Positions 27,200 to 52,913 of a DNA stretch of 64,000 bases are shown piece by piece (position 1 is the stretch's first letter; each line of letters opens with the position of its first letter). The stretch spans positions 186,001 through 250,000 of the forward strand of contig LSRY02000049.1 of the NCBI GenBank assembly GCA_001643675.2, given 5' to 3'. Below the pieces are notes generated by a model. It worked only from the letters and a program-made list of their open reading frames with translations. It did not search any database and was not told the DNA's origin. A program made the translations under genes and the position numbers. Origin of the DNA: Monocercomonoides exilis PA203. Taxonomy: Eukaryota > Protista > Preaxostyla.

Positions 27200-29419
27200 T
27201 CATGACTTTTGCAAGGGCGGGAAAAACCCAACAATCGAATAAAATAGCGGAGATCCCAAGGAGAAAGAGTATTTTAAATTCTTTTTCGGTTTAATATTCC
27301 TTTTCTGCCCGCAATCATCGAAAGTCCAGAGATACTGGCGCCGAGAAGGGGTTGGCATGAACTGACAGTTAAAGCGATGCTTCTTTGATTCTCTGACCTT
27401 ATCCTGATCGGTTTGCCTCAATAATTTTGTTGATTCTGAAAGAATAGAAGAATGAGTTCCAGCTTCCTTCAAGCAAAGAGGAAAGATAAGAACTTCTTCA
27501 AGAGGAGGTTGTGATAAATCGTCTGTTTTTTCCAATAAATTGCTTGAAATCATATCTGTCTCAACGAAAGAGTCATTAAATGCACAAAGATAATTTGTCT
27601 CATCACATTTTTGATGAGATTCCATCATTGTTGATTTCATAGAATTTCTCGAATTCGTTTTCTTTAAGAAAAGTGATGGTGATCGTTTGTGAGTTGATAA
27701 TCGGGGTGATGTATCTGCGTTAATGGAGGACAGATCTGCAAAAAGATTTGTAGGCGTATTTCTTGAGACTGTTGTTTGAAGGTTATTAGGAAATGAAGAG
27801 AGAGAGAGCTTTTGCGAAATTGTTGAGCATGAAAAGTTAGAAGACGAAGGTGAAGGTTCAAATGACGATGGTTGTGCTTCATCATAATAAGGAAAACTTT
27901 GATTACTTGAGAATATTGGTGAATGCTTAGATTTCATTGTCAGGGGAATTGACCCCATTTCATGAAGTGGTAATTCTGAATTGCATATCATTTTTTCTGT
28001 GCTTAACATGTTTTCACTGTCTTTTTGAGCATTTGGCTCGGATTTGGAGTGGTTTGTTGCTTTTCGCACTGCCTTTCTATATTTCCTAAGTCTTTCATCA
28101 AAGAACACCTCCAAGTTGGTCATTTCTTGTTTTTTATTCATCTTCTGCATCTTCTTCTCTTTTCTCTCGATGATCCTTTCCAAATGTTTGCGCTCCTCTT
28201 CAGCCACTTCAAAGCTTGCTGCATTGCTTAATCGTGCATGCAACTCTTCCAGTGTGTACCCACTATACGAAGAACCTTTCTTGGAACATTCATTGTCTTC
28301 TTCTTCTCTCTCTCTTTCAGCCTCGTCCCACATCTTTTTGATCTCTTCGTCGTTTTCGTCGATCCACTCTTTTCTGTTCCATTCGCTAAACAATTCATAA
28401 AACTGTTTTGATTCTCTTATTTGTCTTTTGTTTTCTTCAATAACTTTCAATCTCAAATCTCTTTCCTCTCCTTTTTCCAGAAAACAGGCATCACCATAAC
28501 CATCACCTCTTATCGTGTTTGCATCGCCTCTGAGTTCTAAATCACGTTTCATCCATTTGTGATTCATCTTTCTCTTCAGATATGACAAAATGTTTGAGTC
28601 GTCTTTCGTTCCAGTTGCAGCTGCCATGTCATCTGCATAGTTGACTTTTGATATCTTGACTGTATTTTGACTAATAATTCCATCCATAATCATCTGTTCC
28701 AGTGAAGATGACGATACCCATGAGCCAGCTGAAGAGCAGGAGCCAACGGAATTTGTTCTATGGAAAGTTGTTTTGTCTTTATCATTTTGTTCCGGTTCTG
28801 TTTGTTTTTCAACTTCACTGCATTCTTTCGTTTGTGTTTCTTTTGTGATTTGATTTTGAGAATTTTTGATATTTTTAAGTTCTTCCGTTTTTTGTTTGTG
28901 ACTGAGCATCTGAGCATAAAAGTCATCAAGCAATTCGACTTGCGTTAGTCCATACTCCGGGAAAATATAACTTTCGCTGATATGATTTTTTTGAACTTCT
29001 TCTGCTGTTGGACGAAGAGAAAGAACGGCTTCATTATGTTCTCTCAATGTAACGTAAGGCTTCCTGTGAGAAAAATCGAAGCGATCTTTATTTTCTTTGT
29101 GTTGATTCGCTTCACCATATTGTACTTGAGAAATATCAAAAGAAAAGTCTTTGACGTAATTATCTTTACTCATTGATGAAGAAATGCTTGGATACTCTGA
29201 AGAAAATTGAACGGTCGGATAATACCAAGCACTTTGAGAAGACGCCTCTAGATTGAATTGAGAAAAAGATTGTAAAGGATAAAATGATTGAATGGGCAAT
29301 GGATTTTGCAGTATCTCCTCCTTTTCATTGAATAAAAACGTATTTTGCTGTGAAGGTGATTGTTGCGTGGATTTGTTACTAATTGTCACGCTTTCTGTTG
29401 TAGTGGAATGCAATTGCAT
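27200..29419 (-). CDS. Unassigned six-member family ('GEWxRKEW' domain), member 1, 739 aa
   Basis: Long ORF with core KRQIRESKQFYELFSEWNRKEWIDENDEEIKKMWDEAE...GYTLEELHARLSNA, shared with five other ORFs in this window. Confidence 0.85.
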   Translation of the reverse strand: MQLHSTTTESVTISNKSTQQSPSQQNTFLFNEKEEILQNPLPIQSFYPLQSFSQFNLEASSQSAWYYPTVQFSSEYPSISSSMSKDNYVKDFSFDISQVQYGEANQHKENKDRFDFSHRKPYVTLREHNEAVLSLRPTAEEVQKNHISESYIFPEYGLTQVELLDDFYAQMLSHKQKTEELKNIKNSQNQITKETQTKECSEVEKQTEPEQNDKDKTTFHRTNSVGSCSSAGSWVSSSSLEQMIMDGIISQNTVKISKVNYADDMAAATGTKDDSNILSYLKRKMNHKWMKRDLELRGDANTIRGDGYGDACFLEKGEERDLRLKVIEENKRQIRESKQFYELFSEWNRKEWIDENDEEIKKMWDEAEREREEEDNECSKKGSSYSGYTLEELHARLSNAASFEVAEEERKHLERIIERKEKKMQKMNKKQEMTNLEVFFDERLRKYRKAVRKATNHSKSEPNAQKDSENMLSTEKMICNSELPLHEMGSIPLTMKSKHSPIFSSNQSFPYYDEAQPSSFEPSPSSSNFSCSTISQKLSLSSFPNNLQTTVSRNTPTNLFADLSSINADTSPRLSTHKRSPSLFLKKTNSRNSMKSTMMESHQKCDETNYLCAFNDSFVETDMISSNLLEKTDDLSQPPLEEVLIFPLCLKEAGTHSSILSESTKLLRQTDQDKVRESKKHRFNCQFMPTPSRRQYLWTFDDCGQKRNIKPKKNLKYSFSLGSPLFYSIVGFFPPLQKS

Positions 29420-29809
29420 TCTTGAAAAAGACGAATATGCTTCTATGAATCGAATTCAAAAAATGATTTTAAAAAAGGAATAAAGTTATTTTAAAAAAAC
29501 AAATGCAAAACCATGATTCATCACAATTTCTTGATTCAATAAGTTGTTCTTTCTCGAATGAAATTCGATTATGAATTGTGAAATTTTCAATTCTTTCAAG
29601 GAAATATATAGAAAATAGTAAATATGACAATTAAAAGTGAAACAAACAAATAACAGTATTCCAATAACACAGTTGACATACAAAATTAATTTATCCAATA
29701 AATCAAGTTTAAAATTCAAAAAATAGAAGAGTTCTGAAAAAACAATTTTGATGAAAAAATAATTACTCATACATGATCAATTTTTCGGAAAATAATACAA
29801 ATAATAAAC

Positions 29810-32458
29810 TCAAGAACATTTACGAGGATTATATAAAAATTGTGAATATTTAATGTCTTCTGGTTTAACTTCTGGTGCGGGTGTAAAAAATGAAAGATCA
29901 AGTTTCTTTTTAGAAGTATCCGCCAAATCATCCATTGAAAATAGAACAGGACCGAATTTCGCTGGCTTAACTGTATCGTTGTAATTCTGTGATGAATCTT
30001 TTTTTTTGTTGTCAAAAGCAAATAAAGATTGGACATTTGGTTGTAACGTTAATACAAAATCTTTCTTGAAATTTGATTGTGACTCCGTTTGTTCTCCAGC
30101 ATTATTTATTTGGGAAATAGCAGAAATATTGCTAACATCAAAACTCTCTCCCTCAAAAGGAATGGAAGCTGGGTACTCACACTGTTGCTGCTTTTGCGGA
30201 GATAGCAAAGGTGATGGCGGATGAGGGGTGGAAGGCGGTGTTGGGGGAGCTGTTGAAGGCAAAGAGAGGCACTCTCCATCTGCCTCTTCATTTGTGTCTA
30301 TTGAAAATATATGCTTTTCAAATTTTACTGTTTCATTTTGACCCAACTGTGATTTAGGCTGTAACTTTTCTGTTGCTTCAAAAAATGAACTGTTGTATTT
30401 ATCTGAAATAGAAGGAGATAAAGGCTGTGGCATCGTCAATGATGAAAAAGAGTTTGAATGCAGAGGGAATGCATTTGAAGAGAATAGTTCATGAGAAGCA
30501 TCTGGATGAATGAACTGTGGCATCATTGTGTTTGGAGGATGATGCATACTTGATTCAAAATATGTTTGTGATTCAGTCGGAGTTTGAGATGCTGCTGGAA
30601 TAGGAGTCACTTCATAACATACTGGCATCAGTGTGTTATTTGCTTGGATATCTACAGCATCCGAATCAAATGGCACAACATTATCACTTTGAATAGTTTG
30701 TATGGAAGAATAAATATCTAACTTTGGAGTTTTTGAAGGAGAAACATCATCTAAAGCAAATTCTTTGGTGGTTTCAATTTCAGATGGAAGCGCTTTCTTC
30801 CTTTTCTTCCTTCCTTTTTCCTTCCTTCTCCGCTCATCAAAGTATTGCATCAGTTTATATCTTTGCAGCGATGTTAATGTTTGATTCTTTTCTTCTGTTT
30901 CCTTCAGCTTCAGTAGTTTTGCCATCTTTCTTCTCAGCACTTCTATTTCTGACTCTGGCAGCCCCAGTTCTTCTGCTTCATTCAGTCGATTCCTCACTTC
31001 TTCCAACGTCATTCCGCCTTTCTCCTTTTCGCCTCCTTCGAAAGAATATGCTTTCTTCATCACTTTCGCTTCGGCCTCGTCCCACATCCTCTTCTCTTCC
31101 TCGTCTGTCACCCACTCTTTTCTGATCCATTCCCCAAACACTTTAAAATGGTCAGTGGCCTGTTTTATTTCGCGTCTAATTTCCTTAATCCGCCTCTTTT
31201 TCGCTTTCTCCAAATCCAAAAGGCTTTGTGATGATAAATCTTGCTCCTCATAGCAACTATCTTCATTGAAAGCGCTCTTTGAAGTGCTAACTAGCTTTGA
31301 AGAAGGCCTGTCTCCTTCAGACAAACGCATCTCATCGGCCGTTCTCCACCTGTGAGTCAAGACTCCTCGCCTGAATTCTGTGATTCCTGAAACTTTTGTA
31401 TTTTTCCACACAAAGTCATCATCATGTGCTAATTGCGATTCAGCAGTAACTGTTGGATGCCAATGATCAAAATTATCAATAATTTCCACATCCGCATCAG
31501 AAAATGAATTCAAAGAAGATGTAGATAAAGAGTAGCGATCTGAGTCACAAAAAATATCTTCCTGTTTTTCTTGTAACGTATCATTCAACACTATCTCTTG
31601 TTCTGAACGCTTCAATCGATTCTTCCTTTTTTCCTTTTGAGTCAAGTGAATTTGTTGTTCAACCTCATTAAGGAGATCACAAGGTCTGCAATCGCATACG
31701 TGTTTTGTGATGCGACCTGACATTATTGCTTGCAATTTCGGATCGATCGGCTGTTCTGTTGATGTGGTTGCATTATCTATATTTTCGCTTAAAAGTACAT
31801 TCGGACAAAATTCAGAAGAATTCGACAGAGGCTTTGCTGTTTCGATCGGTTTGCTTTTGCTGTTTTTATAGTTTTCCTTTTCTGCTTGCATCTTTAGCAA
31901 GATTTCTATGTTGGTATCAGAATCGTTAAATCCTGTAAATGAAGTTTGACAGTTTGTTGACGAATTTGTTTGCGTGAATCTAGATGAAATTACGCTTCGC
32001 ACGGTTCTTGCTTTCTTCGAATGGGCAGCGATGATTGTTTTCATTGTCTCTTCATCTCCATTTTGTTCATTTGCTTTGGATCCTTTCGGAACTGGATCAG
32101 AAAGAGTAATAAATGGTAAAGAAGATCGAACTGAATAATCTGTAATAAAATAATTTGTCTCATTGCCTTCGGTGGTATTTGATGTTTGAGTAGTAAGTGA
32201 TAAAATTGGAAAAGTTCTTCCAGAAAATGATGAATTCGCAACTAAAAACGGTATATGTGTTGATGCATAATTATCACAAAGATTTGCTTTTGTATTTTCA
32301 AGTGACGGATAGATATCCTGTTATAAACAGTATTTTTCATACAATTTAAAATGCAATAATTGAAAAATAGAGAATATTTCCAATAATAGGTTAAAAAATG
32401 TCATTGACAAAACAAAAAATTTTTAAACATGTTTCCCGCAAATATGTTCAAGTGTCAT
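29810..32458 (-). CDS. Unassigned six-member family, member 2; main exon 32317-29810, probable small first exon 32458-32429
   Basis: Core RREIKQATDHFKVFGEWIRKEWVTDEEEKRMWDEAE...GGMTLEEVRNRLNEA. The frame stays open ~90 codons upstream of the tracked ATG (32044) to a CAG acceptor ending at 32318 and includes the family SSLPF motif. The first exon (MTLEHICGKH) is tentative. Confidence 0.8.
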
Positions 32459-32663
32459 TTACTCTTTCATCCGAAATTTTGTAAAAACAACAGAAATAAA
32501 AATAAATAGAATAAATTATGGCAAAAGTTCATCAAGTAAAATTTTGTAAAAACGAAAGTGAGAAAGAAAAAACATACAAATGAAAAGTTAAGTCATTGCA
32601 AAAAAACAACTTTAATAATTATTCAATAAGAAATGATTAAACTGTTGAGAATTGGTTTAGCAT

Positions 32664-34924
32664 TCAAAAAGAAGTAAATGAAATCTCTTTCTCGATGTTC
32701 ATGTTCTTTGATGTGCTTTCTATCATGGCTTTAATCTTTTCTTTTTGTTCGCTTGAAGCCTCGTCATTTATAAGTGGTTCGGAGTATTTGAAAAATATTT
32801 CAGCTAATTGTTTCTTTGGCATGCTGCGATAGTGTCTTCCTTTTAGCTGGAACCATTTTTTCCACTGTTTCTGAAGACTTGGAATGAATTCGTCAAAACA
32901 CCATAAGAATTTTCTTTGAGGTGGCGTTAAGTGCAACAAGCGTTGCTTTATGGTCTTTGTAGATGCTCTCTCTTTTTGTTGCAAAACTTCACGTTGCAGT
33001 TGGTTGTTAGCATCATTCTCATTTCCATTTGAATAATTCAACCAGCACAATGAGACAACAATAGGAATTTCGTTATTTGATGTGTTTTCATTAATACCAA
33101 AAGAGCAGTCTGTATTATTATCTTCTGCTGCTTGGAAGCGAAATGGATCTCTCAACTCTTCTAGAAAATGTTGAACGTTTTGATTGCACGAATGATCTGA
33201 AGATAATTGCTGTTTATGCAATAAACTTGGTGCTGATGAAGCTGGATGTTCTAGGAAAGAATAGAAACTGGTGCGATCGGGATTCAAAAGGAGTGAATGA
33301 TACGAAAATCCATCTGATACAAAGGGCTGTTGCATTTGTGAAGATACAAAAGGAAATTTTGAAGATGCGTCTTGATGTTTGTGAAAGATTAATGAATTTG
33401 AAAAATCATCGATGTTCGAAATTGAATGGGAATGAATTGATGAAAGCGTATCATCAGCAACAAATGGAAACTCGACTTGAGTGAAAGTTGATTTTTTGTT
33501 GTGCTCTTGTTGGAGTAATGGTGAATGTTGATCAAAAATAAGTGAAGAAATTGAAGTACTGGGATCTTTTTCGCCTTCTTGTTCCTCTTCTTGAAGTGCT
33601 TCGTCTTTTCTCTGAGAAGAGTGGTTTCCAGCGGTTGCAATGAACCTGTTGTAAGTCTTCTGTCTTATAAACCCGTATTTTTTGAAAGGCGTGACTATTT
33701 TGTTATCCAAATCCTCTTCTGTGATCCGTTCACATTTTTGGAGTTGGTGCCGTATCAAAACTTGCTCATTTTCTGTTATTCCATTTTTGTCAGCATCTTT
33801 GAGAAGTGACTTCATCTCTTCAATTGTTGCCAAAGAAAACTTGCATTGCCCGTGCTGCCGATTCCATTTTGCTTTTTTTTCTGTTTTGTTCCACAAATCT
33901 AATTCTCTCTTGTCAAACATCCACGGCTTTCTTATCCATTCTCCATAGAGATAATAAAATATCTTCGCTTCGTTCAGCTGCCGATTAACTTCTGATAATC
34001 TCCTCTTCCATGCCTTTTCTTCCACATTTTTTGTGTATTGCTCAAAATTCGTATCCTTTTCTCCATCTTCATCTTTAACAATATCATCAATTCTTTCTAA
34101 TTTATTTCTGTCCAATTTCTTCGAAATAAATATATCTGATGATTTTAGTAGCCCCATTGCATTTAGCATTTTCGCATCTGCTTCCTCCCATTTCTTTAGC
34201 AACAAAGTCTTTTGCTCTTCAGCGAATTCTGGGCGCTTTGTAATCTCTTCGATATTATTAGCATCGGCACATTGAGCTTTATTTATTTCGCAAATCGGTT
34301 CCCAACCTCTTTCGTTTTCTTTCAATAATTGTGCAAATGAATCAATTGATGAAAGGGTATTTGATGAATGTGAAGAAATCGATGACGATATCGAACTTGT
34401 TTCGGCTGTTTGAATGTCGAAATTTTTCCCAATAATTGGTTGATTTTCATTCTTTGAACCAAAAACTTTTTCAGCAACTGGACCTTTCTCATTGTTGCAC
34501 ATATCTTAAATTTATAAATATAGTTCTTCGTTATATTGTTGATATATTATGATTTGAGCATACCAAATTTTGTGATATCTTTTGAGCGAAATGCAAATGC
34601 TTGTTTCTCTTTCATGTGAGAACTTTCTTTCTTGAAACATTGTGAAGAAATTTTACCGCGATTACAGTTTGATGAATTGTTTGGAGAGGACTGAAACTTT
34701 TTTGGAACAAAAACATCTGGAGTTCTGAGAGTAAAAGGCAGTGAAGATTGCTCGTGTGAAATTGTTGGAAATGTGTGTCGAGGTGATGTGCATGATGATT
34801 CTGTTGTTCTAGAAGAAAAAAATGCTAAATTTAACATAGAAGGTTGTTGAATTTGGCTTTCGATGGTTCTGTCAATGTAATTTTTCTTTTCCAAAATTTT
34901 TGATTCTTTCTCTTTTTCTAGCAT
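32664..34924 (-). CDS. Unassigned six-member family, member 3, 733 aa; exons 34924-34564 and 34504-32664
   Basis: Core NRQLNEAKIFYYLYGEWIRKPWMFDKRELDLWNKTE...ATIEEMKSLLKDA. The 125-aa ORF 34547-34924 (contains SSLPF) joins in phase via a 59-nt GTATGC..AAG intron (34563-34505). Confidence 0.85.
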
Positions 34925-35253
34925 AACGAATTTTTTAAATATGTTAAGAAGCGTTAAGCATATTTAAAATAGTAGTTATCCATCCATCATACCCTGTTCC
35001 ACAAACTGTAATTGTGAATAACTTGAAAAAAACCAAGGAGCATTATGAGAAAATGTGAAAAATGATTGCTTTGCATCATTAGAATTAATTTCGTAAATGT
35101 CTCGTACCCTTCTATTTTGAAGGTCGAGATTAAAGCTCATTTATTTGGAAAAATCCTTTGAGAAATATGAAATTTTTATAATTTATTTTCAGATCAAATA
35201 AAACTGTCCTGTATCTTTGTTGAAACCTTCTATCGCTAGATCATTTTAGCATA

Positions 35254-38200
35254 TTGTCGTATATGATAGAATCTATAAAACATTTTGTGGAAGAAATTGA
35301 AAATGAGGTCGTACACTTTACGCAGCTTGACGATATACTAAAACATTCGATTGTACTCTCCTCAATCAACCAAAAAGCAACTTATACAGATACTGAAAAA
35401 CGCCGTGAGCGTGCTATGCGAAATATTGTGGAAAATAGTTCGAATGAAAGCTCTTTTTGTTGTGTTTCTTCAAAGCAAATAGAAAATGAAAATTTTACAA
35501 ATCCAATACATAAAACAGAAGTTTTGGCAACAAAAGACGAAGAAGAAGATATCCTGTCTACAATTTTAGATTGTACTAATTCAATTTCCACTCTTACTAT
35601 CGCTCCAAAGCATGAAAAGTCAGAATCGAATAAGTCCATTCATGAATCAAATTTTCAGGAACAACAATATAAAGTGCTTTCGCAATGCCAACAAGATGCG
35701 GAGAGTGGACTTTCACTTTTTCAAAGTTCAACTCCTCAAGAAGCATTTGTTAGTTCATTCTTATCTTCGACGTATAAATCTTTTCCTTTTTCAACTGTTT
35801 TGCCAGATTACTCTTCGTATTTTTCTGAATCCAACATTGAATCATCATCAAGCAAATTCTCTGTTCCTCCTCAAATTGAAACTTCATTAAATTCTTCGGA
35901 ACAACAACAAATCTCATTTATAAAGGAAAACGATCCTTTTTCTCACTTAGCATCACTTCTTCATCCAACTCCAATTGTGTTATCTTCGTCCGAAGAAAAT
36001 ACGCAAGCTACAGTAGACGCGCTAAAAAGCGGTAAACAATCTTGTGACACTTGCGAGCCAAAAAGTGATTCTTCTTTATCAAAAACTACTTCTTCTATAT
36101 CAAAAAGTTCACTTTTGTTTGAGCGGTTGAAAATTGAAGCAGTTGTATTCGTTTTAATTGCATTGCAACAACAAGAATCATGGAATTTAAAGAAGCAATC
36201 TTCTTCGTCATCAGCTTCAGCCTCTTCTAGTGAAGATTTCTTATTGAAATTGGCATCACTTCGAGATCTTGTTGTTCGTTTTTGCTGTATTCGTGGAATT
36301 GTGATGGCTCATGAATTGATAAAAGAGAATGAAAATGCTTCAAGTTCAAGTTCTTCACCGTCATGTTCAAGCTCTGAAGCATCACCTGCAGCATCAAATG
36401 ATTTGTTCAATCCTCAGAAACATCCTGACTTGTTCCAAAAAGTGTCTCAGTGGATGGATCTTTTGTATTTGCGCTATGTTCCTCGGTCTGTTCTTCCGCG
36501 TCCGTTTTCGGCTATTGACTTCAACCAGCTAAGAAAGATTGATGAGCAGAAGAGGCAGTGGTTTCAGGCAAAAGTGGAGGAAGGAGACGAGTTTGCAGTA
36601 CTGTCTGATAAGCGGATTCCGGAATGGGCAAAGATGAAGTTTCAGAAAATGGCCGAAAAGAAGAGGGAAATGGACGAGCTGAAGAAAGAAAGAGACGAAA
36701 GAGAACTGCACAAACATAATGCTTCCACGCAAAAAGCGAAAAGTTCAAATTCAAAACATAAAAATGCTTCGGATAAATCAAAAAATTCAATGAAAGAATC
36801 CCAGTCAAAAATGATGAAAGTGTTTAATTCAATTAAATCTACACTTTCGTTCTCTCAGCAGCCAAAAACAGTGCAGCATTCATATTTGAACATGATCTCA
36901 AGTTCAAATGCATTTTTAGACGCAAAGGGCAGTCCTTCTCATCCATCTGCTGATTCCATTTCACAAAACTCTGAAGCTTTAGCTTTAACTCATTCTTCAA
37001 GTTCTGATTTATCTTCTTCTTCAGTAACTTCATCGTCTTCTCCCTCAATTCCACCATTTCATTTCTTGAACCAATCGCTTCCTCCAAATGCTTTCCTTTT
37101 CCAGCCGCCTTTTGATAGCCCTATTGTCGAATTGTCAAATATTCCTCTTACAAAAAGGAAGATGCAATGTCTGATTGAAGGAGAATGGCTGAATGACGAA
37201 GTCATCAACTTTACGATTGAATTGATGAAGCGGAGGATGGTGCGAACAATACATGCACACGGTTCAGCCGAAGAAAAACAGCGTCTGAAGATCAGCGGAG
37301 TGGATGTGGAAATGAGGGAAGAGAAAAACGGAGCAGAAATTGAGAAAAGAAAGGCTATGGGAGAACCAGGATATGAGGAATGGGATGTAGAAAAGGACTT
37401 GCTGAGTTGTGGATCGTCAGGATGGAATCCAGAAAATTGTTGTCAAATTTCGCTTTCTCTTCATAAGGAAGAGCCTGTCGCTCTTCAGTCGTATGATGAA
37501 TCTTCTACAAAAACAGCAGAACTGCCAAGTCTTGATTCTTTGTGGAGTTCAAAGGAAGAATTCTTACAAGATCCGATCACCAAAATTCTAAAAGTTAATC
37601 CGTTTGAAATGTACAGATCAACAGTGTATTCTTTAGACACTCCAACAGCCTTATCTCAGTCATCGCCTGTTGTTGCTTCTTCTCCATCTGCAGCTAAATT
37701 CTCACAGTTTCCTCATTTCATCACTCCTTTTTGGAGGGACACTTCACTTCCTCTTTGTTACGCAACAAACACTTTCTTCTATGGAAAAGTAAGTGAAGGA
37801 GGTGTTGGATACAACTACGATATGGTCAAAAGATGGACAAGAAGGCGAAAAGCATTTGTTTTCTATGAAAGAGAAGTACTGATAAATAACTCATCTTTCA
37901 TTTCAAAAATATCATTATCATCATCTTCTTCTTCTTCTTCCATTTCACATTCAAATGTCCCAAACAAAATCAAATTACTTCTTCCTTTGTTCGACAAAAT
38001 TGTCGTTCCTATTCATCGCTTTTCTCACTGGACTTTGTGTGTGATAAATTTGAGGCTGCGACGCTTTGAATATTATGATTCTCTCAAAGGATCTGGAGAG
38101 AATGTTGTTGCGACACTGCGGAGGTGGGTAAAGGATGAGATTAACGACAAGGGAATTAAAATATGGAGGCTGCAGGAATCCTCAGCAGCTTCATTGTCGG

Positions 38201-38472
38201 GTGCTGGAAAAGGAGGAAGTGATGTGCGTGTTGAAGAGGAGATGTCTCGGGAAGAGAAAGAGGCATATGCAGCAGAAATTGAAAGGTGGCCGTTATATCG
38301 ACCTGCGCAGATGCCTGTACAAGAGAATGGATGTGATTGCGGAATGTTTATGTTGTTAAGCTGTGATTGCGTTATGAGAAACTCTTCACTCAACTTCAGC
38401 CAATCGGCAATCAATTACGTAAGAAATTCGCTTGTTGAAGTGCTTCGCAATTCAGGAGGAGACGGTTTCTGA
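35254..38472 (+). CDS. Ulp1/SENP-family SUMO protease (peptidase C48); true start codon uncertain
   Basis: Motifs CLIEGEWLNDEVINF, NTFFY..YDMVKRWTRR, KIVVPIHRFSHWTLCVIN..FEYYDSL (His, Asp) and PVQENGCDCGMFML (Gln, Cys). Catalytic triad is intact. Confidence 0.92.
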   Translation: MSYMIESIKHFVEEIENEVVHFTQLDDILKHSIVLSSINQKATYTDTEKRRERAMRNIVENSSNESSFCCVSSKQIENENFTNPIHKTEVLATKDEEEDILSTILDCTNSISTLTIAPKHEKSESNKSIHESNFQEQQYKVLSQCQQDAESGLSLFQSSTPQEAFVSSFLSSTYKSFPFSTVLPDYSSYFSESNIESSSSKFSVPPQIETSLNSSEQQQISFIKENDPFSHLASLLHPTPIVLSSSEENTQATVDALKSGKQSCDTCEPKSDSSLSKTTSSISKSSLLFERLKIEAVVFVLIALQQQESWNLKKQSSSSSASASSSEDFLLKLASLRDLVVRFCCIRGIVMAHELIKENENASSSSSSPSCSSSEASPAASNDLFNPQKHPDLFQKVSQWMDLLYLRYVPRSVLPRPFSAIDFNQLRKIDEQKRQWFQAKVEEGDEFAVLSDKRIPEWAKMKFQKMAEKKREMDELKKERDERELHKHNASTQKAKSSNSKHKNASDKSKNSMKESQSKMMKVFNSIKSTLSFSQQPKTVQHSYLNMISSSNAFLDAKGSPSHPSADSISQNSEALALTHSSSSDLSSSSVTSSSSPSIPPFHFLNQSLPPNAFLFQPPFDSPIVELSNIPLTKRKMQCLIEGEWLNDEVINFTIELMKRRMVRTIHAHGSAEEKQRLKISGVDVEMREEKNGAEIEKRKAMGEPGYEEWDVEKDLLSCGSSGWNPENCCQISLSLHKEEPVALQSYDESSTKTAELPSLDSLWSSKEEFLQDPITKILKVNPFEMYRSTVYSLDTPTALSQSSPVVASSPSAAKFSQFPHFITPFWRDTSLPLCYATNTFFYGKVSEGGVGYNYDMVKRWTRRRKAFVFYEREVLINNSSFISKISLSSSSSSSSISHSNVPNKIKLLLPLFDKIVVPIHRFSHWTLCVINLRLRRFEYYDSLKGSGENVVATLRRWVKDEINDKGIKIWRLQESSAASLSGAGKGGSDVRVEEEMSREEKEAYAAEIERWPLYRPAQMPVQENGCDCGMFMLLSCDCVMRNSSLNFSQSAINYVRNSLVEVLRNSGGDGF

Positions 38473-39549
38473 AAAGTTGCTGTTTTAAATGCATTTCATT
38501 TTCATTTCATTTTTCATGAAAGACTTTTTTGTTTATATTCCTTCCTAACGATGAATACAATGCAAAATAATATTTTTTCTGTCACGGTTATTTCAACGGG
38601 ATTGAAGCTAAAAAACCATTACTCATGACAAATCAAATTTGAACAAAATATGTGTGTGAATAATTACCAAGAATACAAATGATATTCTCAATAACATCCT
38701 TAAATGAAAACTGAACATTTCATGAACAAAATTATTATACCATAACAAAAAACCTACGAGAAATTAATAACGACTTTTTCTGCTTTATTTTTTCACAAGT
38801 TTGGGGTGAAATGTGTGTTAAATTTCGAAATCATATTTTTATCTAAAAAAAAAATAGCAATTTGAGAATTAGCATCGAATATTCATAAAATATTCATAAC
38901 TAAATAATTACACAAAAAAGAATAATCCAACCTTGTATTCATCTTCAAAATTGATTTTGATAACAATTGGCAATATCAAATAAAATTTATTAAAATTTTT
39001 TAGTCGAAAACACAACACTTTTTCATTATTAACACCCCGGATAAGGTTTTAATTTCAAAAATTATCACCCATGCATTGATAACAAATACGAAATGAAAAA
39101 AAGCATGAACTCTCAAAAGGAATGAACCTCACAATTTTTTTCTTTATGTTTGACTTATTATTTCGGTTGTTTGATGGAATGTTGAATAATCTATTTCCAA
39201 TTAATTTTTAAGGATCTACACAAAGATGTGTTTATTAATGGAATAGTCGAAAATGTTAATATACTGGGACAGATAAATTGGAACTTATTTTATCAATTTT
39301 TACTGAAATTTTATCAAATTTCACCATAGTGCAAATATTCTCACATCGCACAGGTTTTAATGCTCAAATTTTCAAATTAAAAAAAAAATGATGAATTAAA
39401 TTTGAAAAAATGACCGATCATGGTCAAATTGACTTTTATTCAAAATTTTTCATTAGCAACTTTTCAAAAAGAATAACTCAGATTGATAATTTGACGTGTT
39501 CTTTTTCACACTGTCAAACAATTCAAATTGAACAATAAAGATGAAATTC

Positions 39550-42841: not shown

Positions 42842-43191
42842 AACATTTCACAGAATTTCTCCATAACCTTCTTTTTTAACAATTTTATCTGAATTAACTT
42901 TCATTTAATATTTGTACTATCATTTAGATAAATTTTTGACTCCTTCAATTTTCACTTTCTGTTTAAAAGTATTTTTCATTTTTCACCTCGTCTTCTAATT
43001 CTTCAGCACTTCATAAGATAAATGTGAACATTATGAAATATATCAACATTTTTTTCAACATTTATAAAGAAAAACAAAGTTATAAAACGCAATTTGGAAA
43101 TGAAAGAGATACAAAAGTAATTTTAAAAAAATTGCCTTAAACAATTTTTCGCTTTGAATAAAAAACATTAAAACAAGAAGAATTGAATCAA

Positions 43192-44888: not shown

Positions 44889-45223
44889 ACTCCAATTAAA
44901 CTTATTAAATCTTCGAGATGAAAAACAAAAGAAAAAAAAAAATAATATGTCTCAAAAAATGTTTTCGAATGATGAATTTGTTCACTTTTTAATTTAAAGG
45001 TATATATTTATATAAAAAAATTTGTTGTCCCTAAATGATAATTTTTCAGAATGTTCTGTTAAAAGACTTTGTGTAAAGATTACAATGAAGAATGTCGAAG
45101 AAAACATGATAAAAGTTTGTGCAAATGCATTAAATTATTGATATATCTATTTTGAAAATAATATAAATTGTGATAAATTGAATAATTTTTATATTTTATG
45201 AGAATTGCTTCGAAAATAATGAA

Positions 45224-47386
45224 ATGTCGCACTTTGAAGAATCACACGAACCTTCAAGATTTCCACATTCTTCGTTATGCTATACGTCGCAACCATCATA
45301 TTTCATTTTTTCGAAAACAAATCATTTTCCAGAAACGACTTCATTAAGTCAATATCCTTTAACTTCAAATAAAAAACAAGTTTCAACATATGAGGCAACT
45401 TGCGCATCATCACTTCCGTTTACACTCAAGGATTTCGAAGCTCAAAAACGAAAAAGTACTGAACAATCAACGAATTATCGGTCTGTTGCGACCGAATTAG
45501 AAAAGATTTCCGTACAAGCTTCACGCAATTGTGATTCACAATCTTGTAATCAATGCTTAGTTCGAGAATTATCAGAAACTACATCACCAACAACGCAAAT
45601 GAAGAAACACTCATTTTGCAAAACAAATCATGCTTCATTGAACATGACGAATGATCAAGTATTAAAGTATGATCCACAACATGACAATCAACAAATAGAA
45701 AAAGAAGATGCCGAAATAAGATCTTCTTTCCCAATTAAAGAACAACAGTCTTCTTTATCAGTTATCGATCAGGTCAAACATTCTCAATTACTTAGCTTTG
45801 CTTCGACAATTCCTCTTGCTCTTTCAAAAACAACATTTGAGTTCTATTCAGAAATGTGCAATGAGTTCAAAAAAAGTCAAGCAAGGATTGTGGAATCAAA
45901 AACGAAAAACATAAATCCAATTGAAATAACTGTAGACAGTGTTGAAGCAGTAGATTCAGTTACAAGATCACAAGGTCGCTGTTCTCCTTCACTTTCATCT
46001 TTGTCCGAGAATTCAATTGATCAACTACTTGAAGAAAACATCACACACTGGAAGCCTCAACCAGAGACACAAGCGGCTATGTGCTATGACTTTGACTTCA
46101 AGGTTGATGGAGTGAGCCAATCTTCAGTGGCGATGCACCGCAAAAGTGAGATGATCGAGCGTTGGAAAAGTGCAGACGCCGAGTTCATCAAAGAATATAC
46201 TCCAACATTGTCATCATCTATGTTCGTGAGAGGAAATTTGGAAGGCGTTGATCTTGATGAGGAGTCCAGGCGGTTGAGAAAGGAGATTGTTAAGCGGCAG
46301 ATTAAAGAAGCCAAACAACACAAGAAGCTATTTGGAGAGTGGGTGAGAAAGCAATGGATTCAGGACGAGAGCGAAAGGAGAATGTGGCAAGAAGCAGAAA
46401 AGAAGATGAGAATCAAAATAGAAAGAACTGAACAGGAAATAACAGAAGGGAAAGTGGAGAAGACACTTGAGGAGTTAATAAGCGAGCTCAAGGAAGCTGA
46501 ATGCGTTGGGGCTACAGAAGAAATCCTGCAAAATCTGAAATCAGAAATTAAGAAGAGAGAACAGAAACTTTACAAGAAAATACAAAAAGATGAATTAACC
46601 TTTTTTCAGAGGGATTGGATTTGGGCTGCAAGGCATAACAGACGAGATATTTCCTCAGGAGAAATGAAAAAGATACTAAGAAATGAAGAAGATTCCGCAT
46701 GTACTGTTGGCTTCACCAACAATGAATGCAGTTCATCATTTGAATTATCGAAAAATAGTGAGAAAACATTATCTTCCGTTGAACCAGAATCTGTTTTTGA
46801 TCCTAATTTACAAACACCTTGTAATAAAATTTCTTCAGTTGGGAGCACATTTACTACTGCAATGCATTTCTCAAAACAACCAAATAATAAGATCCTTAAA
46901 GCACAAGCTTCTAACCTATCTTTTAAAATACCTTCGTCTGAACAAAGAGTTTCTTCTGCAAATTCAGAGATTTTAGCAAAGCTTCATTTTCTCCAAAGCG
47001 AAAAAATTCATGTTTCCGATTTTGAAGAGTTGCTCAGCCCATACTCTGTGTTAAATGATTGCATAGAAGAAGAAGAAATACCAACAACAGAGGAAGTGGT
47101 CTTGCTTGATCGTGATGAGTGGTTCGATCGGTTTAGCGATCCTTTTCTCAATCCAAAGATAAAGAGAAGAATGAAAAGAAGAGGAGAAGATGTTCAGGCC
47201 TTTGTTGAACAAGAATCGCAGGTTAGAATCGAAATTATTTCGAACCCTCCAATCATTGTTCCATTGAGATTATTAAGTGAACTGGCCAATCATTTAAGTT
47301 CTTTAAAGAAAGCTTTGCACCCTAAACCTCGCCAAAAACAATTTTATTTTCACAAATCAAAATATTCAAGAACCCTATTTTTTTAA
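45224..47386 (+). CDS. Unassigned six-member family, member 4, 720 aa
   Basis: SSLPF; LLEENITHWKPQP; MIERWKSADAE; KRQIKEAKQHKKLFGEWVRKQWIQDESERRMWQEAE...KTLEELISELKEA. Confidence 0.87.
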   Translation: MSHFEESHEPSRFPHSSLCYTSQPSYFIFSKTNHFPETTSLSQYPLTSNKKQVSTYEATCASSLPFTLKDFEAQKRKSTEQSTNYRSVATELEKISVQASRNCDSQSCNQCLVRELSETTSPTTQMKKHSFCKTNHASLNMTNDQVLKYDPQHDNQQIEKEDAEIRSSFPIKEQQSSLSVIDQVKHSQLLSFASTIPLALSKTTFEFYSEMCNEFKKSQARIVESKTKNINPIEITVDSVEAVDSVTRSQGRCSPSLSSLSENSIDQLLEENITHWKPQPETQAAMCYDFDFKVDGVSQSSVAMHRKSEMIERWKSADAEFIKEYTPTLSSSMFVRGNLEGVDLDEESRRLRKEIVKRQIKEAKQHKKLFGEWVRKQWIQDESERRMWQEAEKKMRIKIERTEQEITEGKVEKTLEELISELKEAECVGATEEILQNLKSEIKKREQKLYKKIQKDELTFFQRDWIWAARHNRRDISSGEMKKILRNEEDSACTVGFTNNECSSSFELSKNSEKTLSSVEPESVFDPNLQTPCNKISSVGSTFTTAMHFSKQPNNKILKAQASNLSFKIPSSEQRVSSANSEILAKLHFLQSEKIHVSDFEELLSPYSVLNDCIEEEEIPTTEEVVLLDRDEWFDRFSDPFLNPKIKRRMKRRGEDVQAFVEQESQVRIEIISNPPIIVPLRLLSELANHLSSLKKALHPKPRQKQFYFHKSKYSRTLFF

Positions 47387-47869
47387 CAGTTATCACAATA
47401 CGACAAGCAAAGAATTTTTCACATTGAGTATGTAGAATAACATTTTATCTGTTGGTAAATGAAGGGTTTCTTCTTCTTCTTTTTTTGAAAGGTAATTTTA
47501 CTATCAACATTTATTGTTCAGTCATCCAAACAAAGTTAATTTTCAAAAAAAAAAAAAAAATGAAAATTTCAATTTAAAATGAATTCAAAACCAATTTTTT
47601 CATTTCAAGCAATTTTGATTAATCAAAGTATAATAATTTTTCTAATCCATATGAATTACTAAGAAAAAGCGTTGGAATTGATTTGATGAACAGTACAAAT
47701 TGCATTGTATGCACCTTTTGTTGTTAAAAGCAATGTGCAAGCTTATTTTTTTAATTCAACTTCTAAAATTAAATTTGAATGAAATTAATTTTCTTCTTTT
47801 TATTGAATTATATTTCAATAAAAGCACCCTCAAGATGCTTATTCAATCGAACAAATTAGCAATGAAAGC

Positions 47870-50308
47870 ATGAGAATATTAACTGATCCTTCTATTTTGA
47901 TGCAGCAACGCTTATCCCAAACAGGATTCAAGAATAAATTAGATAAACACCGCAAAGAGCAAACTGTTGCATCAAAACCTATTATTCACCATCAAGCAAC
48001 TCAGCGTCGTCCAACTATTACAACTGCCAAAAATTCAACGTTATCACGCTTTCCCTTTTCATCAACCTATATCTCTTCAGGATATGTTCAAAACACAGAA
48101 ATGACAGTTTCAGCAGTATCTTCTTTACCATTTAGCTTTCAATCTTCTGTTGGACAACAAGATGTAACAACCTTACATGAAAAAATTGCTGAAGAACCTT
48201 CCTTGTCTCATTCCGAGAAAAACTGCGAATTATCCGAAGCATCAGGTTTACCTGTGATTCAGGAGACTCCAACAAGTTTTAATACAAATACTGATCAAGC
48301 AACAGAAGACCAGGAGGCCATACAACCATTAATCTATCAAGCAAACGAAAAAGAAAGAATAGAAACAAAAGAATTTGATAAACAAAAGAAAAATGCTGAA
48401 TTGGAAAATAAAAGTCAATTTGATAAAGACATCAACATAAAAGAAGAAGAAAGATACACTTCACTTCACCTCATCTCGGATATTGGGAAAGAGTATTTAA
48501 GACTTGTTAACGAAGCAAATCAAAAACAAAGACAAGGATCACCAATTACGAATCAACAGGAAAATTACGAGGAACTTTTGAAATCATTAAAAATTACAGA
48601 CACAACAGCTGCCAATTCTTTGACAATCTCACTACCTTCTGGGTCCACCTCGGAATCATCGTCGTTGCTTAACTCACAAAACTTATCTTTTGCTCGCAAA
48701 GAAACATCGAAATCTCCTCCTTCTCCGTTATTATCCCTTTCTTCACTTTCTCAACCATCATCTCCATCAACAACTTCGTGTGAGCTTGATGCGCAACTTG
48801 AGGAGAACATCACGCGCTGGCAGCCACAGCCAAGGCACAAGGTTGCGTTGAGTCGTGATGTGGACTTTGAAGTGGAAGGAAGGCATCAGTCAGCTATTCT
48901 GACATCTTCGAAGAAGCACATGATAAAGCAGTGGGAAGAACAGGACGCAGAGTTTGCTCAACAGACACAGGAATACTCCTCTTTGGCTGAGGTCAATAGA
49001 ACGAAGCAGGAAAAAGGCACAAGAAGTGATTTTGATATTAAGGAGAAGATTAGGAAAAAGAAGAGATCACTTATTAAAAGACAGATCAAAGATGCGAGAA
49101 TGTTTATGAAAGTGTATGGAGTTTGGGTGAGGAAGGAGTGGATTTCAGATCAAGAAGAGAAAGAGATGTGGAATGAAGCAGAGAAAAAGATACACATCAA
49201 ACAAGAGGCAATTGAAAACGAGGACATTTTACATGGAAAAGAGCATGAGACTTTGGAAGAAATGAAAAACAAGCTCCGCGATGCTGATATTAATGCAATG
49301 AAAAATGAAGAAAAAGAAGCTCTCGAAGCAGCAATTTTGAAGAGAGAACGGAAATTACAGGAAAAAAAGCTGAAATCTGAGCAAACAGATTTGCAACGAT
49401 TTCTGAAAACACTACCAAAAAACGAGGATTCAGACCTTGTTCCAAAGAATCATTCAAACCCATCTGCTTTTCAAGTAACTGAAATATCTGCATCTTCGCC
49501 TTTAACAGCGAAATTTGAAAAACCTGCTCCGTTAATGGTCGAACAGCAAGACGGCGACCTGACCCCAACGCAACCGTCTCTCGTAGTCACGCCAGTCTCA
49601 AACGACCAAGCAGAGTCTCGCTCGCTTTCGAAACACCACTCAAAATATCAAATATCACATAAATTTTTAAACGGCTCACTTGTGTCATCTCCTTCGTCTC
49701 ATCGTGGCTCTTCTCTGCATTCACATGTTAGCGACCGTTCTTCAACAATATCTACGCAATCTGCACACTCACTTAGTTCTTCTCAAACCTGTTTGTCATC
49801 TTCTGCTGGTAACTCCTCTTTAAGCTCTCAATTAAATAAATTATCCTCAAAATCAGAGAGACACTCATTTTATTCTTCTTCATTTGTGTTAATACAACAA
49901 AAGGATCATTTTTTGCTTTCTTATTCAAAATGGTCTTTGCTGCATGGGGATCATTTTGACTTTGATGATACAGTTCAACATCTGGTCGAAACAGTTCCTT
50001 ATTTTGTTGTTCTTCGGAATTCTGGTTCATCAACCGATATTCATTTTGCGAAAAATGTGGTAATAGATCAAAATGAAATTCTTCCACGGTATTATGACCA
50101 TTTGCTTAACTATAGAAAAATTAAGAGAATGAGAAAAAAAGGATGCGATGTTCCTTCGACTCCTTTGGAGCTAAGCATTCATTTTGATATTCAACCTGAT
50201 CAGGCTATTGTACAACCAATTTTTGCCGGAATCCGTCCTTTAAAAGCAAACAAACGATTAAAGATTCGTACGCTCCTTTCGGCCATGCGCATAATGATTC
50301 TTAATTGA
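47870..50308 (+). CDS. Unassigned six-member family, member 5, 812 aa
   Basis: SSLPF; QLEENITRWQPQP; MIKQWEEQDAE; KRQIKDARMFMKVYGVWVRKEWISDQEEKEMWNEAE...ETLEEMKNKLRDA. Confidence 0.87.
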   Translation: MRILTDPSILMQQRLSQTGFKNKLDKHRKEQTVASKPIIHHQATQRRPTITTAKNSTLSRFPFSSTYISSGYVQNTEMTVSAVSSLPFSFQSSVGQQDVTTLHEKIAEEPSLSHSEKNCELSEASGLPVIQETPTSFNTNTDQATEDQEAIQPLIYQANEKERIETKEFDKQKKNAELENKSQFDKDINIKEEERYTSLHLISDIGKEYLRLVNEANQKQRQGSPITNQQENYEELLKSLKITDTTAANSLTISLPSGSTSESSSLLNSQNLSFARKETSKSPPSPLLSLSSLSQPSSPSTTSCELDAQLEENITRWQPQPRHKVALSRDVDFEVEGRHQSAILTSSKKHMIKQWEEQDAEFAQQTQEYSSLAEVNRTKQEKGTRSDFDIKEKIRKKKRSLIKRQIKDARMFMKVYGVWVRKEWISDQEEKEMWNEAEKKIHIKQEAIENEDILHGKEHETLEEMKNKLRDADINAMKNEEKEALEAAILKRERKLQEKKLKSEQTDLQRFLKTLPKNEDSDLVPKNHSNPSAFQVTEISASSPLTAKFEKPAPLMVEQQDGDLTPTQPSLVVTPVSNDQAESRSLSKHHSKYQISHKFLNGSLVSSPSSHRGSSLHSHVSDRSSTISTQSAHSLSSSQTCLSSSAGNSSLSSQLNKLSSKSERHSFYSSSFVLIQQKDHFLLSYSKWSLLHGDHFDFDDTVQHLVETVPYFVVLRNSGSSTDIHFAKNVVIDQNEILPRYYDHLLNYRKIKRMRKKGCDVPSTPLELSIHFDIQPDQAIVQPIFAGIRPLKANKRLKIRTLLSAMRIMILN

Positions 50309-50393
50309 TCCCATATTAAATATAGTTTTAATTTTATTTTTTGTATTGTGAATGTCTGACTTGTTTTCCAGAGACAATGCATCAAAGTAATGT

Positions 50394-52913
50394 TTGCATA
50401 GTACACAACATATTAATTTTTATTTATTTTTTCGGGATTTGCCTTTTAACTTTTGGTGCCACCTCATTTCAAATTTGTTCTTCAAAATTTTAAAGACTGA
50501 TAACACCGACAATTCTAATTATTTCGAGCATTGGATAAAAAACGATGAAAGCATTATTGGCTCGTCTGTCGCATTTGAACTCAGTATTTTGTCGCATATC
50601 CCAAAAAATAGTGAAAGTCATATTTATGAGAGTGTATTACCAAAATACAAACAAACAAAATCAAACGCAAACGAAACATTTATTTGTGATTCTTCACAAA
50701 CCGATTTTCCTTCACTATATTCATCGCAATTTTATTCAGTTCAACCAATGCTGATTGGAAAGACTTTTTGCAAAATGGACGGATGCTTTCCACCATCAGA
50801 GAATAAAGAAGATTCCTATACTAAAACATATTACCAAGAGTTAAAAATTCCGTCTCATTTCACTTCAACAGAGTTTTCATCCTTCCGCAAATCAATTCTT
50901 GAAAACGAAGAGGCAAAGTGTTTTCATCTTCAGAATAGCAAAAGTCACGAAACTGAAGCTGCATTATCAAAGAAAACACAAACGAGATCAAAAAATAATA
51001 ATTTACAAACGGAAAGTTTGGATACTGAAAACGATTTTGCAATTAAGAAAGAAAGAATTATTTCTGATTTATTTTGTTCGTTCGAAAATTTTGCACCAAA
51101 ATCAGGAGGATATCATTCAGTTGCATCACCACAGCTTAAAGAATCATTTCGAAAAGATTCTGAATCTTCAGTGCAACTACATAAATCGGATCAAGTTATG
51201 TTAGAATCATCTGACAATCTCACAAATTGGCAGTTGCTCGATGGAAGAAACATCGAAGAAGAACTAAACAGAGTTCCAGATGGTTCAAGAGAATCTGCGC
51301 TACACGTTGTTCGCGAACGTAGCATGCAAAGCCGATGGATGCTTGCTGACAAAGTGGAAGATGAAATGATGTTGAAGCAAAGAGAACACTTACTCGAGCA
51401 GTTTCAAGAAAAAACGAATCAACCAAAGGAAAACTTATACAAGGAATATTCTCAAACACGAGAAAATGAACAAAAATCGCAACAATCTATTGAGGAAGCA
51501 AGTTCAATAAATCCAGAGACGGAGAAGCGGATTGATGAACTGATTACCAAAAGAAGGAAAAAACATATTCAAAAGCAAATCGACGAAGCGAAGCAATTTA
51601 AGAAAGATTTCGGCTATTGGGTGAGGAAGGAAGGGCCGATGAATCCAGATGAAAGCAGCATGTGGGACGATGCAGAGGAGAGTATGCAATTGAAAGAACA
51701 GGAACAAGCAGAGAAAAGCGGAGATGATAAAAGCGGAATGACACTTGAAGAAATGAAAAATCGGCTGAAAAATGCCTCTTCACTTAATCTTTCAGAAGGA
51801 GAGCAGCTTCATTTGCAAAAGGCTATTAACAAACAAGAACTAAAAATTGAACTTCAGGTGCGGCTTTCCAAAATGACTCAATTGGAGAAGGGAAGATGGC
51901 AGCTCCAAAAAGAGTTGTATGAACAATCAGCATATCGGAATCATTTACCAAGGAAAATAAAAAGGGAAATGGAAATTGAACTTGCTGATAAAATTTTAAC
52001 ACAATCTGGAGTTTTGAATTCTTTTCGGTCAGATGACCAGTCGAATCTTTCATTGAATGATACAGATAAAACCATCAATAAGGAAGATTTTCTTGGAGCT
52101 TCTCTCTCACAAACAACTCAATCCTTTGGATCATCTTTCATGGAGGAACGAAGTGCCAACCAATCTTATTCTTCTTTCATCCCGGCTTCATTTTCAACAA
52201 AGTCTCAAAGACCACCGATCCATTACCAACAAAATTCACAAAACTTTTTAAAATATGATTCTAATTCTTCTTCGAATAATTTCAAATCACCTCATTATAC
52301 CTTACCAAAACGATCTCGATTCACATTTTATGAAGCTCATCCAACTTGTTCAGATGAAGTTTTGCCTTCAAGTGCAATTTCAAAAACCGCTAAAGTTAAC
52401 AAGAATACTTTGAAAGGAAAATTTGCAAATCATTTTGAGTCAATCTTTTTACCAACATTACAGCTTCTTTGGAATTACCCCTTTCCAGAGAATTCATATT
52501 TTTCATCTTCAGATGCACTAAATTTTAATGGAGATGTTTTCACAGGAGAAAGTTTGTTTCTCACTCCTTTAATAAAAACAATTTCTCCATCAGATCAGGA
52601 AACTTTTCCGGTTTACGATCAAATGACTTTTTTTCAACAACAGCATCATGATTTCGTAGAACCTTTCGAACTTCCTGTTTCAGTAATCTTGAAAAGGAGA
52701 CATTGCGCTATCCCTTTGATACTACCTTCGTCACTTAATTTGTCATATTTCAGTCAGCCTACTTATCGTCGCGCGATGCGTGCTTTTAGATCCGAGCGGC
52801 GATCAGGATGCATCAGTACAAAGGCACTTTATGCCATGCTTCAATTCAGGCCACCACGTCCTGAACAAGTTAATCTCTTTAGCTTGGGCCACAAAAGATA
52901 TAATTACAAATGA
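50394..52913 (+). CDS. Unassigned six-member family, member 6; the tracked start is a non-ATG codon in AT-rich sequence, so the true start is probably downstream or spliced
   Basis: DNLTNWQL; MQSRWMLADK; QKQIDEAKQFKKDFGYWVRKEGPMNPDESSMWDDAE...SGMTLEEMKNRLKNA. Confidence 0.8.
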   Translation: MHSTQHINFYLFFRDLPFNFWCHLISNLFFKILKTDNTDNSNYFEHWIKNDESIIGSSVAFELSILSHIPKNSESHIYESVLPKYKQTKSNANETFICDSSQTDFPSLYSSQFYSVQPMLIGKTFCKMDGCFPPSENKEDSYTKTYYQELKIPSHFTSTEFSSFRKSILENEEAKCFHLQNSKSHETEAALSKKTQTRSKNNNLQTESLDTENDFAIKKERIISDLFCSFENFAPKSGGYHSVASPQLKESFRKDSESSVQLHKSDQVMLESSDNLTNWQLLDGRNIEEELNRVPDGSRESALHVVRERSMQSRWMLADKVEDEMMLKQREHLLEQFQEKTNQPKENLYKEYSQTRENEQKSQQSIEEASSINPETEKRIDELITKRRKKHIQKQIDEAKQFKKDFGYWVRKEGPMNPDESSMWDDAEESMQLKEQEQAEKSGDDKSGMTLEEMKNRLKNASSLNLSEGEQLHLQKAINKQELKIELQVRLSKMTQLEKGRWQLQKELYEQSAYRNHLPRKIKREMEIELADKILTQSGVLNSFRSDDQSNLSLNDTDKTINKEDFLGASLSQTTQSFGSSFMEERSANQSYSSFIPASFSTKSQRPPIHYQQNSQNFLKYDSNSSSNNFKSPHYTLPKRSRFTFYEAHPTCSDEVLPSSAISKTAKVNKNTLKGKFANHFESIFLPTLQLLWNYPFPENSYFSSSDALNFNGDVFTGESLFLTPLIKTISPSDQETFPVYDQMTFFQQQHHDFVEPFELPVSVILKRRHCAIPLILPSSLNLSYFSQPTYRRAMRAFRSERRSGCISTKALYAMLQFRPPRPEQVNLFSLGHKRYNYK

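Follow-up and report, generated by a model that had tools for sequence, protein, structure and literature searches.

What are the six long open reading frames (ORFs) that lie within 27.2 to 52.9 kb of a 64,000-nucleotide stretch of the Monocercomonoides exilis PA203 genome (contig LSRY02000049.1, positions 186,001 to 250,000 of the forward strand; hereafter, the window), and do they make up a system of their own? Three of them (p1 to p3) are on the minus strand and three (p4 to p6) on the plus strand, with the two triplets pointing apart. A first-pass annotation, made from the sequence alone, had located the six ORFs at these positions, where we indeed find them, and had read them as a six-gene family and a candidate for an undescribed system, laid out as divergent triplets around a central gene block. 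Our analysis establishes that the six are real nuclear genes that carry introns, that at least two of them (p4 and p5) are transcribed, and that the protein family and its core domain are undescribed. In contrast to the earlier reading, the window holds one local cluster of a large multigene family and not a family of six. We put the probability that we have correctly described the identity and architecture of this family, which is built on a core anchored by conserved tryptophan (Trp) residues, at about 0.7.

Is the shared core real? The six proteins align collinearly over approximately 230 amino acids (aa; MAFFT), with invariant columns W, D, W-R-K, W, E, T-E-E, L, A, and T. In BLASTP comparisons run with composition-based statistics, SEG, and a database size of 1e7 residues, all 15 pairs are significant (E of 2e-3 to 3e-35), and a core hidden Markov model (HMM) built from 22 members outside the window matches each of the six window proteins (E of 7e-31 to 1e-54). 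The collinear core claimed at first pass is therefore borne out, and the similarity withstands correction for composition in every pair. Mean pairwise identity among the six is 27% in the core versus 18% in the flanks, and the latter value is alignment noise for serine (Ser)-rich sequence, in agreement with the earlier remark that the Ser-rich flanks barely align.

The core was also suspected to be helical, and the AlphaFold2 model of the p5 core, computed with a 28-sequence alignment, agrees (mean predicted local distance difference test score [pLDDT], 83; predicted template modeling score, 0.67). In this model, a short helix is followed by a beta-hairpin at residues 34 to 43 and a long antiparallel helical hairpin (residues 44 to 81 and 87 to 118); a loop at residues 119 to 129, predicted with a pLDDT of about 96, bears the W-x-R-K-x-W of the motif G-E-W-V-R-K-x-W, and helices at residues 130 to 160, 164 to 173 (capped by T-L-E-E), 181 to 206, and 209 to 216 complete the fold. 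The core is again confident in the model of full-length p4, with pLDDT mostly 70 to 95 over residues 260 to 480, and residues 1 to 200 and 483 to 625 are of low confidence and, as far as the model can indicate, are probably disordered. At the C terminus of p4, a small helical unit, formed by the type A module described below, is predicted, with helices at residues 644 to 719 and pLDDT of 80 to 90 at residues 641 to 670.

How are the proteins built around this core? Conservation beyond the core, read from alignments of 25 to 28 full-length members, reveals a common order: an N-terminal SS[LIVMFS]PF motif, an approximately 200-aa Ser-rich linker that is predicted to be disordered, the approximately 230-aa core, a second disordered linker, and a C-terminal module of either type A or type B. 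The motif occurs in 28 of 102 N-terminal regions versus 0.41 expected from shuffles, in a set where some genes are present both as our own ORFs and as database models, which inflates the counts somewhat; it lies some 55 residues into the protein, leaving about 200 residues to the core. The two conserved C-terminal modules are new relative to the first-pass annotation. Type A spans about 70 to 130 aa; its D..E...R is invariant or almost so, and its consensus is LD..EW..RF.DP..N.RK.KR..K.G.D......PP...PF. Type B spans about 50 to 100 aa, with the consensus R....TPPQRKFLW.FDE...N.KK.WK.WF. Genome-wide, 42 of the 43 type A matches and 31 of the 34 type B matches follow a same-strand core match at a distance of about 0.5 to 2.5 kb, and the two types never occur together in sampled members, fused gene models excepted. 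By leave-out HMMs, type A is present in p4 and p5 and type B in p1 and p3, and p2 and p6 fit neither. The flanks contain 12 to 18% Ser. In the cores, E, K, and R are abundant, and the whole-core pI is 5.7 to 8.2 (near neutral or acidic); a conserved basic stretch directly precedes the core Trp loop, and clusters of K and R recur in tail A. None of the six proteins has a hydrophobic or transmembrane segment or a signal peptide (maximum 19-residue Kyte-Doolittle mean, 1.1).

How large is the family? When the six-sequence core profile was searched against the M. exilis genome (82.3 Mb in 101 contigs), at least 138 matches were found, corresponding to at least about 129 loci after split matches were merged; this count is a lower bound, with 150 of 156 candidates scored. 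The open frames range from about 380 to 1,100 aa. Family loci are present on most large contigs, often in tandem arrays, and the contig of the window (C46) alone has about 16 members, including arrays at about 520 to 534 kb and 628 to 635 kb. Even so, the 25.7 kb under study is dense, as it holds six members versus 0.04 expected from the genome-wide density. At only one locus does the core match contain stop codons (C2:1149936-1150621), leaving about 128 of 129 without them. The exception, C2:1149936-1153475, has a TAA and a TGA in its core match and a type B tail fragment that also has stops, and it is probably a pseudogene.

Does the family belong to anything already described? The first-pass annotation recognized no known domain, and none of the resources that we consulted returned anything specific. 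Against Pfam, the six full-length proteins gave only chance matches of 12 to 14 bits at E of ≤1, and among 28 single cores, no family was matched by more than two members (best E, 0.002). PDB sequence profiles yielded nothing specific for the core or for either tail, the best match being HalB at an E of 0.03, which we judge to be chance. Structural comparison was likewise unproductive: Foldseek against the PDB found nothing specific (best E, 3.8), and VIA-align of the core and full-length models found only generic helical hairpins; BFVD gave no viral match (best E, 0.6), and ESM Atlas gave template modeling scores of ≤0.34 by shape and no usable match by language-model features, with the last third of the core barely sampled in these comparisons. 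The antiparallel hairpins of the TASOR-Periphilin core (6swg) and of de novo helical bundles are generic ones like that in the family core.

Two known families nonetheless invite comparison. The PHIST/PRESAN proteins (PF09687) belong to Plasmodium, whereas M. exilis is a free gut commensal. Their structural match to the family core spans the helical hairpin only and falls within the noise band for helical models, and a PRESAN HMM match is absent from our Pfam scans; furthermore, the M. exilis proteins have no signal or export element (maximum 19-residue Kyte-Doolittle mean of ≤1.1) and have their own N-terminal motif and C-terminal modules. The likeness is thus one of analogy and not of membership. 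In Myb/SANT domains, three Trp residues are spaced about 18 to 20 aa apart in a three-helix helix-turn-helix (HTH) fold, whereas the core Trp residues of the family are spaced by 5 and 10 residues (W373, W378, and W388 in p4), with one more Trp about 60 residues upstream. Given this spacing and the absence of a Pfam match, we reject Myb/SANT membership.

The taxonomic distribution appears narrow. When 1.84 billion cluster representatives were searched exhaustively by HMM, 92 proteins were returned at E of ≤1e-3. We looked up 30 of these, mostly from the weak and middle score range, and 28 are M. exilis proteins, nearly all labeled "hypothetical" or "uncharacterized"; for one M. exilis gene model, the newer version is named "putative scavenger receptor class B." Another sampled match, a butterfly protein (E, 2e-5) with eight short matched stretches, is probably spurious. 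The last, a fragment of 166 aa, lies on a Logan contig of 1 kb (positions 398 to 1018; run ERR6050748) and matches the core profile with an hhalign probability of 97.7%. At the DNA level, nothing in the M. exilis genome matches this fragment, which therefore comes from another organism. A stop codon directly follows its WVRKE motif, which could reflect an intron, a sequencing error, or a pseudogene. When 5.8 billion proteins were queried with the p5 core by a word-indexed search, only the protein that contains it came back, a pattern scan of JGI metagenome contigs gave 37 pattern matches and no relatives, and a literature search for supplementary tables listing the family genes found none. As far as the searched libraries reach, the family thus appears to be restricted to its lineage, and the lineage-specific character proposed at first pass gains support from the sampled matches.

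Are the genes expressed, and how are they structured? In four RNA libraries from one study, 51 to 71% of the sampled words of 45000-50900 are present. RNA contigs cover p4 from 45245 to 47407 in four runs and p5 from 47910 to 50382, also in four runs and with contigs of ≤1,719 nucleotides (nt), continuing into the start of p6 (to 50753); between 47405 and 47900, RNA depth is zero in most runs. Two GT..AG joints, each seen in one contig, define 5' introns of 88 nt in p4 (45115-45202; joint 45114>45203) and of 118 nt in p5 (47707-47824; joint 47706>47825). With frames across the introns read locally in the sequence, these joints add short, probable first coding exons with in-frame ATGs: 45085-45114 for p4 (ATG plus 9 codons) and 47686-47706 for p5 (ATG plus 6 codons). 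The joints are spliced, and therefore the sequences are RNA and p4 and p5 are separate transcripts.

These transcripts also bear on the reference gene models. MONOS_3466 (1,394 aa), which contains the p5 core at 100% identity, is a model that joins p4 to p5 via a further predicted intron at 47222-47628. Three contigs from three runs, however, run without a break across 47222 and end at about 47405, a short way beyond the stop codon of p4; the model wrongly fuses the two genes. MONOS_127 (1,262 aa; C60:168467-174573) likewise merges two tandem members, and tandem arrays of the family have probably been merged by mistake more widely in the reference models.

The main exon of p4 (45203-47386, plus strand) contains a 720-aa ORF from the ATG at 45224, with SSLPF at 45407-45421, the core at 46001-46660, and a type A module (LD..EW..RF.DP..NP.K.RR.K..G.D...PP) at 46910-47347, for which a tail A HMM built without p4 and p5 gives an E of 5e-23. 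The p5 main exon (47825-50308, plus strand) contains an 812-aa ORF from the ATG at 47870, with SSLPF at 48119-48133, the core that was used for the AlphaFold2 model at 48746-49483, and a type A module at 49778-50152 (E of 3e-13 with the same HMM). The third plus-strand member, p6 (50394-52913), is open from 50394, with its first ATG at 50748 (721 aa; leave-out core HMM E, 2e-36); its core (51171-51974) reads WVRKEGP, with the second Trp of the WVRKxW loop replaced.

On the minus strand, p1 (27200-29419; 739 aa from the first ATG; leave-out core HMM E, 7e-31) has its core at 28037-28717 and a type B module (TP..R..LW.FD) at 27269-27565, which a tail B HMM built without p1 and p3 detects at residues 619 to 717 (E, 7e-9). 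For p2 (29810-32320; core at 30791-31513; leave-out core HMM E, 1e-46), the ATG-to-stop ORF at 29810-32044 is 744 aa long, and the open frame, at 836 aa, extends about 92 codons 5' of the ATG at 32044 with no start codon there. This start-less extension, which includes SSLPF at 32111-32125, probably points to a short upstream first exon. In p3, a 59-nt GT..AG intron (34505-34563), read from the DNA only, joins two ORFs in frame: exon 1 (34564-34924) is part of a 125-aa ORF at 34547-34924 and carries SSLPF at 34733-34747, and exon 2 (32664-34504) consists of a 612-aa ORF (32664-34502) plus 2 nt. The left triplet was thus correctly delimited at 34924 from the outset. Exon 2 contains the p3 core (33609-34379; leave-out core HMM E, 4e-32) and a type B module at 32790-33089 (E of 5e-18 with the tail B HMM), the latter within a genome-search match at C46:218742-219134 (window 32742-33134). 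All four copies of SSLPF noted at first pass are accounted for, in p4, p5, the upstream exon of p3, and the p2 frame 5' of its first ATG. Cores were delimited from the core alignments.

Between the triplets lie three genes unrelated to the family, with Peptidase_C48 (Ulp1-type), TPR, and Glycos_transf_1 domains; the earlier assignment of this block to Ulp1, BBS8, and ALG2 holds at the level of these domains only. In the Ulp1-like gene (35254-38472, plus strand), the longest ORF begins at a TTG and the Peptidase_C48 match falls into two stretches; judging by these features, introns missing from the annotation or a further exon 5' of the ORF are probable. The cluster is flanked by two uninterrupted minus-strand ORFs, one of 5,163 aa at 10875-26366 and one of 2,165 aa at 53311-59808, the latter with a C-terminal HECT ubiquitin-ligase domain.

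What other accounts of these six genes have to be considered? One is that their similarity is an artifact of composition or coiled-coil propensity, as could be imagined for a core so rich in E, K, and R. The composition-corrected BLASTP E values and the leave-out HMM, with values down to 1e-54, refute this idea; the invariant Trp, Thr, and Asp columns and the confident model of the core also speak against it, and we give it virtually no credence. A second account holds that the six are a local, co-regulated unit around the Ulp1/TPR/glycosyltransferase block, and the divergent and closely spaced triplets do lend themselves to it. However, many other family arrays do without such neighbors; Ulp1-like genes are found at only about 5 loci genome-wide and beside none of the other clusters, and we reject a link between the two families. 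Nor is the layout mirrored, given that tails run B/none/B in the minus-strand triplet versus A/A/none in the plus-strand triplet, and p4 and p5 are on separate transcripts. In a maximum-likelihood tree of 28 cores, the six are not united as a supported clade. We therefore consider a local unit very improbable. The same tree is star-like and unresolved (median terminal branch, 2.1 substitutions per site), and it shows neither the order in which the duplications occurred nor how the triplets arose; with branches of this length, the sequences indicate that the expansion is old, as the first-pass annotation had it.

Could the ORFs instead be cargo or remnants of a mobile element or an integrated virus, multiplied for selfish reasons? 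Copies are numerous and dispersed, the tree is star-like, and some members lie within repeats of at least 11 kb that are 96 to 99.9% identical, in a genome of which about 46% is reported to be repeats, the majority of them unclassified (PMC8767320). One copy of the 99.9% pair is close to the end of a contig (C58:2043000-2062000) and the other is at the start of another contig (C61:5000-24000) in opposite orientation; the pair may reflect either overlapping ends in the assembly or a segment duplicated very recently. Further such repeats are present on C40. But no transposase, reverse transcriptase, or integrase was found beside the members examined, and the 11-kb repeats carry, together with the family member, a tyrosine-kinase-like host gene and no transposase-type domain. 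Moreover, the genes have spliced 5' introns and short intergenic regions of their own, and the paralogs are only 20 to 40% identical and yet free of stops in the matched region at nearly every locus. The neighboring Ulp1-like gene is not repeated with the family, the window neighbors are host-type genes, and neighbors, repeat content, and the BFVD search alike give no sign of transposon or virus membership. A selfish origin is, in our estimation, improbable, if less so than a local unit. The family more plausibly consists of host genes, for which the first-pass annotation had proposed purifying selection on the core; the part of that claim that is borne out is that the ORFs have been kept open.

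What might the proteins do? Based on the domain plan, we tentatively posit that they are soluble, modular adaptors or scaffolds, a possible role that we would not call probable. In this model, the invariant core would provide a common surface for binding or assembly, and the linear motif and the alternative tails would determine the choice of partners or location. The family itself expanded through duplications of old date, both tandem and dispersed, after which the linkers diverged fast. Basic clusters, conserved in the core as well as in tail A, are a hint that the role could be nuclear or associated with nucleic acid. Can this hint be taken further, to a family of lineage-specific, sequence-specific DNA- or RNA-binding regulators in which the basic helix and Trp loop contact nucleic acid, the Ser-rich arms are regulatory, and tail A carries a nuclear localization signal (NLS)? 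The basic stretch before the Trp loop is conserved, a soluble and disorder-rich plan is typical of transcription regulators, and protist lineages have often undergone large regulator expansions of their own. Nonetheless, Foldseek and VIA-align found no similarity to known nucleic-acid-binding folds, Pfam gave no zinc-ligand or HTH signatures, and the whole core is near neutral or acidic, and we think it unlikely that the proteins are such regulators. We hold in the same low regard the still bolder speculation that the core represents a kind of nucleic-acid- or chromatin-binding domain not seen before, and that the approximately 130 paralogs would be the main lineage-specific regulators of oxymonads, with tails A and B marking two classes.

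Several points limit the picture of a lineage-restricted, constrained family of modular adaptors. The Logan fragment, coming from another organism, means that the family is not strictly species-specific, and the apparent lineage restriction depends on the oxymonad proteomes that the searched libraries contain. The RNA evidence consists of contigs from a single study and covers the plus-strand triplet, with p6 at its 5' edge only. The NLS-like clusters are at the level of patterns only, and a homodimer prediction for the core, in which the family alignment was not used, gave an uncertain fold and is neutral on binding. Finally, divergence among the six, at 20 to 40% amino acid identity, is saturated for dN/dS, and recent segmental duplicates have pN/pS values of 0.39 to 0.83, drawn from only 16 to 26 differences per pair; constraint in these duplicates is weak or unmeasurable.

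Among eukaryotes without mitochondria, the flagellate M. exilis serves as the reference organism. Orphan families expanded within a single lineage are frequent in protists; thus, the surprise is a moderate one until a function is shown, and up to that point the family is, in biological terms, a protist orphan expansion of the usual kind, although a large one. What is new is a protein family and a domain, not a demonstrated new kind of biological system. The gains are an HMM-ready domain with two tail classes and the exposure of systematic annotation errors, in which tandem members are fused in gene models.

The largest gene family reported for M. exilis is that of the tyrosine-kinase-like (TKL) proteins, with 332 genes (PMC6759080). 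The TKL expansion is likewise very large, partly tandem, and overlaps "unclassified repeats" (PMC8767320). In contrast to the TKLs, which have a known catalytic domain, the Trp-anchored family has no recognized domain and is annotated as hypothetical. At about 129 loci, it would rank among the larger gene families of M. exilis, though nearly all of its sampled members are labeled hypothetical or uncharacterized. The assembly paper noted that the unclassified repeats could be expanded protein families (PMC8767320), and the family described here may explain part of them.

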